Shown here piece by piece: positions 56,184 to 60,511 of a stretch of DNA of 64,000 nucleotides. Numbering within the stretch: the first letter of the stretch is position 1; each line of letters starts with the position of its first letter. The stretch is taken from the NCBI GenBank assembly GCA_964019335.1, contig OZ025701.1, positions 124,001-188,000 of the forward strand. The letters run 5' to 3'. The notes beneath the pieces were generated by a model that searched no databases, was not told the origin of the DNA, and worked only from the letters and a program-made list of their open reading frames with translations. The stretch is from Diplonema japonicum. Its lineage: Eukaryota; Protista; Euglenozoa: Diplonemea. A program made the translations under genes and the position numbers.

Positions 56184-56372
56184 AAGAGCGAGAGAGTATA
56201 GCTTTTGCTTTTTTATTTTCTTTCATTTTCTTTTTTTTTTTTCATTCTCTTCCCCCCGCCCCCCTCCTCCATCCTTCCGAATTTCTTTCCCCCCCCATTA
56301 TATTTCTGCTCTGCAAGAAGGGAAAAAAAAAAGTCCACGCATTGAAATTCGTCATATAACAAAACACCACAT

Positions 56373-58545
56373 CTAGTACCCAGCGCCAGGTGTGGCGCCA
56401 GTGATGATGGCGATACCTGAAGAGGTACCGATACGGGAGATTCCTGCCGCCATGTATTTCTTGGCAATGGGGAGGGTCTTCACGCCCCCTGATGCTTTGA
56501 CAAGGCAGGTGTCGCCGACGGTGGCCTTCATGATATCAACAGCCTCGGGGGTGGCACCGCCAGTGGAGAAACCAGTAGAGGTCTTCACGAAAACAGCCCT
56601 TGCCATGGCTGAGAGGATGCTTGCATCTATGATCTGTTCCTGGGTGAGGAGGCAGGTCTCGAAGATGACCTTCACGATGGCACGGTTCTTGCACGCGGCC
56701 ACGACTGTCGCAATGTCTTCAAACACTTCCTCGTACTTCCCTTCCATGAGCTTCCCGATGTTGAGCACCATATCTATCTCGGTCGCTCCCGCTGCCACTG
56801 CTGCTGATGTCTCTTTGCCCTTTGACCTGGTGTCCATCGCTCCCAAGGGGAAGCCCACCACGCTTGCTACCTCCACCCCTGTCCCTTGCAGCATGTCCGC
56901 TGCCTCCTTCACTCTGCTGCTGTTCACGCACACAGCGTAGAACTTGTTCTTTTTCGCTTCGTCGCACAGCTTTTCAATCTCCTTCGACGATGCCGTCGCC
57001 TTCAGCAGCGTGTGGTCGATGTACTGCCTCACGTCACCCATCTTCTGCGGGGGAAGCTTCCCATCGCCCCTCAAGTGCGGCAGCACGTCCAGCACGTCCT
57101 CGGTGCCTGTTTGGTTTTTATCTTCTTTCCAAAGGTTTTGGCATACCAATGCACAGCTCTTTTGACATAGCGTGCACCCTCTTCATGATAGTCTTCTTCA
57201 TCTTACCCTGCGCGCCGGGGAGGAGCGTGAAGTCCTCAGCCTCGCCCGTCTTCTTCGCAGGGGTGGCGGACATAGTAATGGGGCCCTCGTGCTTGAAGAG
57301 GCCAGGGCGCTCCTTAACGAACTGGCGCCAGGCTTTGCGAAGGGCGGTTTCCCTGTGGTGGGGTGGTGTGGTGCTTAAAGGCATACTCCTCGTGGGTAAC
57401 GTCACGTTGCGGGCTGCGCATGCCTCCGAACTCGAGGTTAAGACGCTCACTGAGGAAGATCTTTGTTGCGGCGGTCATCTGCCACAACCCGCAGATCTTC
57501 GAGAACATCGCAAACCACTCCCTGCCGGTCTGCTGCTCCTTGTTCGCCTGTAAAAAAAAGAAAGCACAAATAATTAATCAAAAACCAACACGACCCATAC
57601 CTCTTCGAACTTCCCTGAGCTGAAAGCACGGACCATCCTGTTCCACACGGGGCCGATGGAGCTGAATCCGATGGCGATGTGCGCAGTAACACCCAGCGGG
57701 AGGCACGACGTGGTCATCCCTTCGAATCCGTTCAAGATATCGAATTCGGTGCCCACCTTCTTCCCGAAGTCAAGGGTGTCGCCGAGGTCCCACATGTTCG
57801 TTGAGGTGAACTTGGCGCCGCGGAGCGTGGGGACAACGGGGTGGAGGGCTTTCATAATGTCGGCCATGGGGAAGGCGACACCTGTGATGTCGGGGAAGTG
57901 GTAGTACAGGAAGGGTGTGTTGGGTGCCTCGGCAGCGACCTGCTTGGTGTAGTCCACAAGGAGGTCGATGGAGGCGGGTTTGAAGAAGCTAGGCGCCATG
58001 GAGGAGATAGCGGCCGCACCGACATCTTCGGCATGCCTTGCGAGTTCCTTGCTGTCCTCAAGCGACTGCGCACCGATGTGCGCCAGAACGATGAGGTTGT
58101 GCTTCTTACCAGCCTTGATCCAGGCCTCGAGAAGAACCTTCCTCTCGGCAACTGACATGGACATCGACATGCCTGCGGTGCCTGCCACGAACACACCGGT
58201 CATCCCGTCCTTGGCAAGAAGCCCAGCGTAGGCGTCGATCACATCCACGTTGATGCTGTCGTCCTCAAGGGGAGACACAACCGCGCAGAACAGACCCTTG
58301 AAGAGCTTCTTGGTCCATTGGGGGCCCTTCTGCCTCTTGGGTGTCCTTGGTGTCATGGGCATAGCCAGCCTCTTAGCGACAGGCTCCTCCTTGTTCCACA
58401 GCGACCTCTTCAACTTTGTTGAATACCTCATCTCTTCCCCATTTGACACCACACCATTGTCACTGACCTGCCTCACATTGATAGGGGTCATGGCCATCAA
58501 CTCCGCCGCCTCCTGCCACGTGGTGGGCTGTCTCCTTACTGACAT
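56373..58545 (-). CDS. Fusion of N-acetylneuraminate lyase/DHDPS-family aldolase and deoxyribose-phosphate aldolase (681 aa); introns 57548..57600, 57353..57386, 57107..57146
   Basis: N domain: GVFVAGTAG, ERK, APSFFKP, FLYYHFP, GAKFTS. C domain: IDHTLLK, VVGFPLG, EIDMVLN, KVIFET, FVKTSTGF, VKASGG, RIGTSSG. Three GTATG..ACAG introns give one continuous frame. Confidence 0.85.
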
Positions 58546-58686
58546 TATCTTACCTTGCTTGTAATATCCTGGAATCAAATGTTTTGTTGCTATGCGGGAG
58601 GAAGGAACAAAACAAAAAACAAAAAAAGAAAGACAACCACCTTTAACGAGAAGAAGAAAAAACAAGAGGGAAAACAAAAAAACAGA

Positions 58687-58895
58687 TCACAGCTGGAGCA
58701 AAAACCACTCTTTCTTCTTCCCACCCGGCGCACCAGGCTGTGCGGGGCCTTGTTGTCCTGGCGCTGCCTGGGGCGCGATCGGAGCTGGTATCGGAGGCCC
58801 TTGCTGCATCGGTGTAACTGGTTGTTGCTGCACTACCTGTATTATTGAATTGAGGCATCATTTCACCAGCATACCTTCTGCACCTGACCCACCAT
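58687..58895 (-). CDS. Small Pro/Gln-rich protein (56 aa); intron 58837..58874
   Basis: MVGQVQK|VVQQQPVTPMQQGPPIPAPIAPQAAPGQQGPAQPGAPGGKKKEWFLLQL*, via a 38-nt GTATGC..TACAG phase-0 intron. Not in the ORF track. Confidence 0.5.
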
Positions 58896-59036: not shown

Positions 59037-60511
59037 CTAAACAAAATGGCACGGCATGGACGCAAGATTGAGCCGCCGCATTTCGGGGAGCGTGAGGGAG
59101 ACGATCTTACCGTCGAAAGGTGTTTGGTGCACTCGGGTGCTCAGGTATGCGACGAGAGCAGTCACGATCAGGATGGTGGAAATGCTATCGAAGGAATCCT
59201 GGTCGGCAGTTACACTACCCACAACAACTATGCAAGCCCACAAGATGGGCGCGGATATCATTGCCACGAGGCCTGCTATGCCGCCAGGGATCTTATACGG
59301 GCGGTGCAGGGAGGGGTGCTTCACCCGCAACACAACGACGCTGCACAGCACCATGATCAGCCGCAAGGCGTACAGTACCTGCTCGACACTCACAAGCATT
59401 TCGAAGTTCATGGTCACCGTCAAGGCAAAGGTCACAATAGCGTTTAACACGATAGCATTCACAGGCGTCCTTCGAGTAGGGTGCAGGGCACCAAAGGTTT
59501 TGTTGATACTTGCGGTAAAACACCCCAGAGTGCACATTCCCTGAAACGCACGTGAAGTGGTGCACAATGCGCACACCGTGAATCCGAAGGCAGACACGGC
59601 ACCGCCCAACACCATCGCTACCTCTAGCCACGTTCCACCGATCATCCCTGCCACAGGGACCCAGTACCCATCCGTCCACTCTGAGTAGTCTCCTTCATCG
59701 CCACCGTGTGCCGCTGACACACCAGCAAGAACGGGCATCGCGTACACCATTTGTGACAGAATGAGAAGCATTACCAATGCTTTTACAAGGGTCTTCCCTG
59801 GCACGCTGACTTCTTCTACCACGTGCCCCGCATTGTCGAAGCCGCTGAAGTTCCACGAGATGAGCGGTAGGAACGCCCGCCAGTCGACAGTCGTAGGAGT
59901 ATCCCCCCAGTGCGACGACGTCATGCGTGGTGCCTCGCACAAGAACAGCAACAGGAAAGGGAGCACAGAAAACACCATCAACAACACCCCGCTGCTGCCC
60001 ACCTGGTCGATCCCAGCTACGTTGAGCAGAGCACAAGATGCAATGAGGAGGAACTGCAACAATATACGAGTTGCAAAGCTGATCCCTATGAAGCGCTGCA
60101 GATAATCTGCGAAAAGGTTCGGGTATAGGGAGTTGTCCACTACGTCCAGCGTCGCCGTCCACAGCACGGCCAGCATGGTCGCCCACTCGGGCAGCGCAAC
60201 GTTGATCCACATGATGGGGCCCGCGTTTGATGGGATCATCGTAGCCAGTTCGGCCACACTGTGGTTTCTGAATTAAGTGTTAACTGACCATACGCTAGTG
60301 CAGATGGCAATCCCCACAACCATGGCAGGAAGGCTATCCCAATAAGCGTGTTCAGCGGCCCTGCTGTCTTGATGCACCCCTCGATGCCATACGCACCTCC
60401 AACAGTCCCGACAAAGAGCACTCCAAGAAGCTGCTTCGTCCCGAGGCTGGGCTTTGGGGCATGATCGCGCTCATCATGACTGTCGCACACGAAGCAGTCC
60501 CTAACAAGCAT
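59037..60511 (-). CDS. APC-superfamily amino acid/polyamine permease (479 aa); intron 60259..60293
   Basis: VGGAYGIE..AGPL..GLPSALAVAELATMIP, WNFSGFDN..VEEV, RAFQGM, LHRPYKIP, and about 12 TM helices. Confidence 0.9.

Follow-up and report, generated by a model that had tools for sequence, protein, structure and literature searches.

Does a locus of Diplonema japonicum encode two neighbouring aldolases, or one protein that carries both? The question was raised by positions 56373-58545 of the window, that is, the whole stretch of 64,000 nucleotides analysed here (contig OZ025701.1 of assembly GCA_964019335.1, positions 124,001 to 188,000). On the minus strand of this region, the listing of open reading frames (ORFs) showed a start ATG and two large ORFs in differing frames, one of the DHDPS type and one of the DeoC type, and two short coding pieces sat between them. 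The analysis showed the region to be a single gene, trans-spliced to a spliced leader (SL), for a 681-aa fusion of an NPL-like aldolase and a deoxyribose-phosphate aldolase (DERA), and we consider it likely that both halves are active in this lineage.

Four minus-strand exons (58545-57601, 57547-57387, 57352-57147 and 57106-56373) formed a single open frame. Position-by-position computation gave a spliced frame of 2046 nt with 0 internal stops, running from the ATG at 58545-58543 to the TAG at 56375-56373 and encoding 681 aa. The three introns were of the GT..AG type, and all opened with GTATG and closed with CAG. These were intron 1 (57548..57600, 53 nt, GTATGG...ACAG), intron 2 (57353..57386, 34 nt, GTATGC...ACAG) and intron 3 (57107..57146, 40 nt, GTATGC...ACAG), the last of which separated the enzyme halves. 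Since none of the three lengths is divisible by three, any retained intron would break the frame. The initial annotation had proposed that three canonical introns unite the separate ORFs into a 681-aa frame, and its coordinates and frame proved correct on recomputation. The motifs that it quoted (GTAGM, YYHFP, GAKFTS, EIDMV, FVKTSTGF and VKASGG) were also found as stated.

The exons were assigned to protein domains by similarity searches, in which single exons or natural full-length homologues served as queries. Exon 1 (57601..58545, codons 1-315) encoded a basic extension of about 80 aa and most of a DHDPS/NPL-like TIM barrel, judged by its translation, PF00701 and the structure 6arh. Exon 2 (57387..57547, 161 nt) encoded the C-terminal helices of the NPL-like domain, matching residues 289-343 of P0007 at 60% identity. 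P0007 is a 669-aa protein of the diplonemid Namystynia karyoxenos (EukProt transcriptome). Exon 3 (57147..57352, 206 nt) held the end of the NPL-like domain and a conserved linker (P0007 residues 347-419, 43%). Exon 4 (56373..57106) comprised the remainder of the linker and a complete DeoC/DERA barrel, with codons 439-681 and the stop, as supported by PF01791, 3r12 and TIGR00126. P0007 was colinear with all four exons, with identities of 60, 60, 43 and 58% for exons 1-4.

Transcript contigs were aligned with the window. In general, a contig that spans two genes is by itself no proof of one transcript. In the case of X1, a public run (Logan contigs) that is only presumed to be RNA and differs from the window by about 1%, a contig of 1445 nt aligned in four blocks (57014-57105, 57146-57351, 57386-57546 and 57600-58569). 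It skipped 40, 34 and 53 nt, and the skipped segments had CT..AC ends on the plus strand, equal to the predicted GT..AG introns 3, 2 and 1. The contig extended 92 nt into exon 4 past the joint 57147|57106, so that the junction from 57147 to 57106 named in the initial annotation was exact and spanned. A contig of the DNA run X7 spanned the same stretch unspliced, with no joints. This meant that the joined form was a product of RNA processing. The link between exons 3 and 4 was a cis-splice joint, which placed both halves in one molecule. At the other end of the gene, a transcript contig of X1 began at 56345, giving a 3' untranslated region (UTR) of at least 28 nt (56345..56372).

The same 1445-nt contig also located the 5' end of the mRNA. 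It carried 16 extra letters past 58569, whose reverse complement was GTTTCTGTACTTTATT. Followed by GGT (GTTTCTGTACTTTATTGGT), this sequence occurred in 169 copies in the 62.5-Mb assembly to which the window belongs, and a reversed control gave 0. Because of these 169 genomic copies with a donor against none for the control, we identified GTTTCTGTACTTTATT as the 3' end of this organism's SL. One genomic copy read ...ACCAACGATTCTAAAGCTACAGTTTCTGTACTTTATTG|GT. The copies of the SL 3' end with GT (for example, L004:1480-1520) were dispersed over most contigs, and many lay near a contig end, no more than a few kb away. We take this SL to be nearly identical to that of Diplonema. The SL acceptor AG, marked by the loose SL tail on the X1 contig and by the sequence, was at 58569..58570. 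It lay 23 nt upstream of the ATG, so the mRNA body started at 58568 and the 5' UTR was 23 nt long (58546..58568). SL trans-splicing alongside canonical GT-AG introns is known from Diplonema papillatum (PMC10161547). Both processes, the SL sequence and a best named homologue from a diplonemid are in keeping with a diplonemid origin. A gene with three introns is ordinary in a diplonemid with both processes.

The presence of trans-splicing gave some ground for a different reading, in which two genes of a polycistron lie side by side. The NPL-like mRNA would then end after exon 3, and the DERA mRNA would receive its SL at the AG of 57107. In both X1 and X2, contigs ended inside exon 4 (57014-57032), and rare isoforms may escape assembled contigs. 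However, the X1 contig joined 57147 straight to 57106 and then ran on for 92 nt, and such a cis-joint needs both exons together. An SL addition at 57106 with two mRNAs had been named in the initial annotation as the outcome that would separate the halves, and it found no support: among the contigs of X1 and the other runs aligned with the window there was no loose end at 57106, and the SL tail was at 58569. A long pyrimidine tract (about 58590-58680) preceded the real SL acceptor, whereas intron 3 was 68% purine and had no such tract. The frame was open across the junction, with no in-frame stop past the NPL-like domain. Strain differences pointed the same way. Read in the spliced frame, 20 of the 23 differences from the X1, X2 and X3 contigs were synonymous and 3 were not, and in the linker exon 3 all four were synonymous. 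In addition, the transcriptome of another genus held full-length fused ORFs. The reading as two separate genes is already largely refuted, and we regard it as extremely improbable.

The C-terminal half of the single fused protein was clearly of the DERA family. Exon 4 matched PF01791 (DeoC) at 1.2e-17 in Pfam, and the deoC equivalog TIGR00126 scored 247.4 bits against a cut-off of 117.3 (247.5 in the genome scan). The solved DERAs 3r12 (1.1e-61) and 3ngj matched at 1e-61 to 1e-60, with EIDMV, FVKTSTGF, VKASGG and RIGTSSG aligned. In E. coli DERA, Lys167 forms the Schiff base, Asp102 and Lys201 act in the proton relay, and Tyr259 is a mobile C-terminal residue (PMC8403123). Through the conserved motifs of 3r12 and 3ngj, the equivalents of all three catalytic residues were assigned: Asp549 in EIDMV (56772..56774) would correspond to Asp102, Lys612 in FVKTSTGF (56583..56585) to the Schiff-base Lys167, and Lys641 in VKASGG (56496..56498) to Lys201. 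The protein ended in ...PGAGY before the stop, so that Tyr681 (56376..56378) was a free C-terminal tyrosine in the place of Tyr259, and the GY end was found in all eight full-length fused homologues described below. A genome scan showed that the DeoC of exon 4 was the sole DeoC locus in the 62.5-Mb assembly. From these sequence features, DERA function of the C-terminal half is highly likely.

Compared with the known DERAs (T. maritima 3r12, E. histolytica 3ngj and E. coli 1jcl), this half shared the full barrel, the catalytic residues, the GG and SSG phosphate loops and the C-terminal tyrosine. It differed in that about 440 residues of NPL-like domain and linker preceded the barrel, whereas the DERA structures known so far have a single domain and 204-288 aa. 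A search for literature linking diplonemids and DERA returned only a glycosome-targeting table (PMC7237986). The fused protein ended in GY and had no PTS1-like tripeptide.

The N-terminal half was NPL-like in fold and in its catalytic centre. PF00701 (DHDPS) matched exon 1 at 2.6e-31 over aa 82-314 in Pfam, and the best PDB match was human NPL (6arh, 1.7e-47, residues 77-312), followed by bacterial NALs. By alignment, Tyr215 in YYHFP (57901..57903) was the counterpart of the catalytic Tyr137 of E. coli NAL, and Lys245 in GAKFTS (57811..57813) that of its Schiff-base Lys165. The NAL barrel and both residues were therefore present. Lys245 and Lys612 aligned to the catalytic positions of their families, which bore out the claim that both Schiff-base lysines were intact. 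Human NPL and bacterial NanA also shared with this domain the DHDPS-family (beta/alpha)8 fold, the lysine in G-x-K-F-T/S, the tyrosine in YYHxP and, as in NPL, an FF(K)P segment.

However, the substrate-binding positions differed from those enzymes. GXXGE is the alpha-keto-acid carboxylate-binding motif of the NAL family (PMC5380162, PMC6213981). At its position (aa 122-126, 58168..58182), where XX is expected to be Ser or Thr, the fused protein had GTAGM: the first Thr was kept, the second residue was Ala, and Glu was replaced by Met. The residues for recognition of N-acetylneuraminic acid (Neu5Ac), Asp191, Glu192 and Ser208 in E. coli numbering, were replaced by Glu275, Gly276 and Ile292. 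Accordingly, the segment at aa 273-276 (57718..57729) read G-F-E-G against the canonical G-x-D-E, and I-A-I-G-F-S stood where canonical NALs have G-S-T-Y-N. The 80-aa extension and the DERA partner were further differences from NPL and NanA.

Exon 1, a query that covers about 80% of the NPL-like domain, stayed below the NanA equivalog cut-offs (89 against 281 for NF003164 and 75.7 against 382 for TIGR00683), and so did the full-length homologue P0007 (98.1 and 82.6). The DapA model TIGR00674 gave 68.9 bits against a cut-off of 206.15. The model of archaeal 2-keto-3-deoxy-(phospho)gluconate (KD(P)G) aldolase, NF040954, matched at 2.8e-20 with 72.8 bits, far below its cut-off of 390. KD(P)G aldolase (2nuw, PDB match 6.7e-11) is likewise a pyruvate aldolase of the DHDPS family, and it serves here only as a model of how the domain might act. 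The initial annotation had called the domain Neu5Ac-lyase-like. This was right for the fold, the lysine and the tyrosine, and it did not hold for the GXXGE glutamate, the recognition residues and the NanA cut-offs. The NAL of C. glutamicum cleaves Neu5Ac even though it has none of the three recognition residues (PMC5380162). Since that enzyme is active without them, the present domain may also cleave Neu5Ac. Judged from its residues and scores, however, the domain has no demonstrable identity as a sialic acid lyase, and Neu5Ac cleavage is unsupported. The standalone proteins P0169, P0170 and P0171 had the same GFE / IGIxFS pocket and kept the GXXGE glutamate. This places the N-terminal domain in an NPL-related subfamily.

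The extension in front of this barrel (codons 1-80, 58306-58545, minus strand) was basic and poorly conserved, with TP/SP motifs (..MTPRTPKRQK..). All full-length homologues had an N-terminal extension, which in a second clade carried an RRR...DDSDDDER motif instead. The equivalent residues 1-47 were disordered in the model of P0007. Inspection by eye found no obvious PTS2 or mitochondrial signal in the extension.

The genomic context for Neu5Ac cleavage was ambiguous. A second, standalone NPL-like gene of 359 aa was located on contig 17 of the same assembly (about 164919-165998). Its product was 33% identical to the fused N-terminal domain and had GTASE, YYHIP, GVKYTA and G-L-S-E. It thus kept the GXXGE glutamate, and its sugar pocket was also non-canonical. 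No NeuB (PF03102) was found in the genome. Two genes of the GlcNAc-2-epimerase family (PF07221) were observed, on contig 45 (336156-337253, minus strand) and contig 98 (89133-90158, plus strand). Epimerases with no NeuB may possibly be a remnant of, or an alternative to, ManNAc/sialic acid salvage.

We then looked at whether the fusion was particular to this genome. Homologues were sought in two ways, with the DeoC exon in an exhaustive HMMER scan and with P0007 in a word-based search. At least eight full-length fused homologues were found, so the fusion also occurs outside this genome, and Pfam confirmed both domains in most of them. Besides P0007, they were P0156 (724 aa, on an 844-kb contig), P0157 (663 aa), P0158 (664 aa), P0002 (684 aa, with the canonical GTTGE), P0006 (678 aa), P0161 (663 aa) and P0003 (649 aa). 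The Schiff-base lysine and the tyrosine were kept in the window's protein, P0007, P0156, P0157, P0158, P0002, P0159, P0160, P0162 and P0168. In the window's group these two residues were invariant, the GXXGE position varied among GTAGM, GTAGA, GTSGM and GTAGG (Glu to Met, Ala or Gly), and the N-terminal domain was conserved like DERA, with about 55-65% against 52-58% identity. In P0006, P0161 and P0003, the Schiff-base lysine was lost (RGAIARS, RGFIATS and RGFIFED), as was the tyrosine. The N-terminal domain of this second group was 22-29% identical to that of the window, while its DERA half was 50-56% identical and, at 244.8 bits, above the deoC cut-off. The linker motif LPGxxGxLxxKIxxR ... 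FPHL was conserved in both groups, and its PHL part continued into exon 4.

P0159, P0160 and P0162, called on contigs of 1.2-3.5 Mb in ENA assemblies, comprised the N-terminal domain only. They broke off at ...LT.EEY, exactly where the window has intron 2, and the calls carried read-through sequence right after this point. From the break position alone, they are probably fusions split by the gene caller, and the shared position suggests a conserved intron 2 site. In a quick-form tree of DeoC domains, the fused ones fell in one group of 14 rows (support 80), which also included short rows, possibly fragments. In the AlphaFold model of P0007, both barrels had a pLDDT above 90. The linker was confident and helical over 390-445, and only 376-384 was disordered.

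The second group raised the possibility that here, too, the N-terminal domain has ceased to be a catalyst and is a pseudo-aldolase, acting as a tetramerisation scaffold or regulatory module, so that the protein is in effect a decorated DERA. In P0006, P0161 and P0003, the loss of both residues went with an intact DERA half. The window's clade itself had lost the near-universal GXXGE glutamate, and the linker was conserved across both clades. In contrast, all members of the window's clade had Lys245, Tyr215, Thr123 and Thr247, and conservation of the N-terminal domain equalled that of DERA there. The standalone P0169 and P0171, with the same pocket, suggested a working enzyme subfamily. We therefore consider a pseudo-enzyme somewhat unlikely in this lineage.

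At the other extreme, two active aldolases would work in sequence on an unusual substrate, or would share glyceraldehyde-3-phosphate, in an undescribed pathway. As an example, a 3,5-dideoxy-ulosonate phosphate would be split into pyruvate and a 2-deoxy-aldose phosphate, which DERA would convert to acetaldehyde and a smaller aldehyde; the probability of such a route appears low. Fused genes are a classical sign of linked functions, and both Schiff-base machineries were intact. Moreover, a sugar pocket unlike that of sialic acid lyases leads one to expect another substrate. Some aldolases of the DHDPS family, among them archaeal KD(P)G aldolase, whose model matched here, use glyceraldehyde(-3-phosphate) as aldehyde partner, which is also a product of DERA. 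However, three fused homologues kept the architecture with a dead N-terminal domain, so two-step coupling was not the general reason for the fusion. DeoC was also found fused to the unrelated partners PfkB and RpiB-type PF02502. The literature search returned no paper and no known metabolite in support of such a pathway. We regard the sequential reading as quite improbable, and the 3,5-dideoxy-ulosonate pathway suggested by the initial annotation was not supported, with the sugar-recognition residues of NAL missing from the N-terminal domain and Lys and Tyr lost in three relatives. In a narrower version, limited to the window's clade, the NPL-like domain with its remodelled pocket and altered carboxylate motif would split or form a novel 2-keto-3-deoxy acid. 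It would pass its aldehyde to DERA or receive it from there, as a 2-deoxy-aldose phosphate or glyceraldehyde-3-phosphate. Cooperation of the two centres in this form would also be quite improbable. If true, a single polypeptide would carry out two class I aldolase steps as a natural cascade, and diplonemids, which are among the most abundant marine heterotrophs, would have a new catabolic route.

The reading that we favour is a single fused gene whose DERA half is, by the comparison of homologues, the constant, selected function. The minus-strand transcript is trans-spliced to the SL 23 nt before the ATG, and three very short GT-AG introns are removed by cis-splicing. The predicted protein consists of a disordered basic extension of about 80 aa, an NPL-like barrel, a mostly structured linker of about 70 aa, a DERA barrel and a free C-terminal tyrosine. 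The C-terminal half would interconvert 2-deoxyribose-5-phosphate with glyceraldehyde-3-phosphate and acetaldehyde through a Schiff base on Lys612, aided by Asp549 and Lys641. With less confidence, the N-terminal half would be a Schiff-base aldolase of a 2-oxo acid (pyruvate), using Lys245 and Tyr215 on a substrate other than sialic acid. In the window's lineage this domain is probably still an enzyme, joining a 2-oxo acid with an aldehyde other than ManNAc.

The N-terminal domain and the linker may also have a structural, oligomerising role, which would preserve the fusion where catalysis was lost. P0006, P0161 and P0003 lost Lys and Tyr and kept DERA, and so catalysis by the N-terminal domain is not required wherever the fusion is kept. 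Since the domain was retained where no Schiff base can form, the fusion would have a value independent of that catalysis. This value would be explained most simply as assembly or stability. Proteins of the DHDPS family are tetramers.

Some points weigh against the favoured reading. The transcript contigs are assembled, the run is only guessed to be RNA, and the strain differs by about 1%. In the P0007 model, a pTM of 0.62 left the relative placement of the barrels uncertain. The N-terminal domain fell short of the NanA cut-offs given above, and with the GXXGE glutamate replaced and the second Ser/Thr changed to Ala, pyruvate binding may be impaired. The activity of every family member is predicted from sequence alone. 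As to the central claim of the initial annotation, one gene and one mRNA encoding an NPL/NAL-like class I aldolase followed by DeoC/DERA, it was borne out by the contig, Pfam and PDB matches.

Other DeoC fusions offered a comparison. PfkB-DeoC (P0125, 562 aa) and RpiB-type PF02502-DeoC (P0164-P0167, 408-440 aa) were similar in that DeoC was always C-terminal and joined to a sugar-metabolising partner. They were different in that their partner was a kinase or isomerase that plausibly feeds pentose phosphates, whereas here it was a second class I aldolase, degenerate in some relatives. DERA would stand at the C-terminus because its terminal tyrosine must stay free, and this need is a plausible reason for DeoC being always last. 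Many other DeoC matches were 450-510 aa long and had an unassigned region of about 240 aa at the N-terminus (for example, P0016 and P0030).

Two features were observed upstream of the gene. The summed contig depth of X7 rose about tenfold at 58636-58722 (8727 against 905), and at 58649-58682 short contigs were stacked by the dozen. This indicated that the pyrimidine-rich segment ahead of the SL acceptor was a genomic repeat with many copies. The next upstream ORF (59037-60257, minus strand, 406 aa) looked by eye like a multi-pass membrane transporter, and its position on the same strand was consistent with polycistron-like gene packing.

Both aldolase families have been studied thoroughly and are workhorses of biocatalysis. 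The initial annotation had allowed for the fusion being common and already characterised. It was indeed shared by at least eight homologues, but a literature search found no paper on a DHDPS-DeoC architecture. It is a real, conserved, uncharacterised domain fusion and a new architecture of two well-known families. Public gene calls for this locus in assemblies of relatives end where intron 2 lies and thereby miss the fusion. The fusion was conserved across several diplonemid-like lineages, and it amounts to a natural experiment, in which the partner domain of one clade kept the Schiff-base machinery and that of another lost it. The contrast is an instance of a pseudo-enzyme arising after a fusion, and it makes the purpose of the fusion testable as catalysis, channelling or scaffolding. 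Because it is the sole DERA of its genome, it is through this fusion that these abundant ocean protists are predicted to cleave deoxyribose phosphate.

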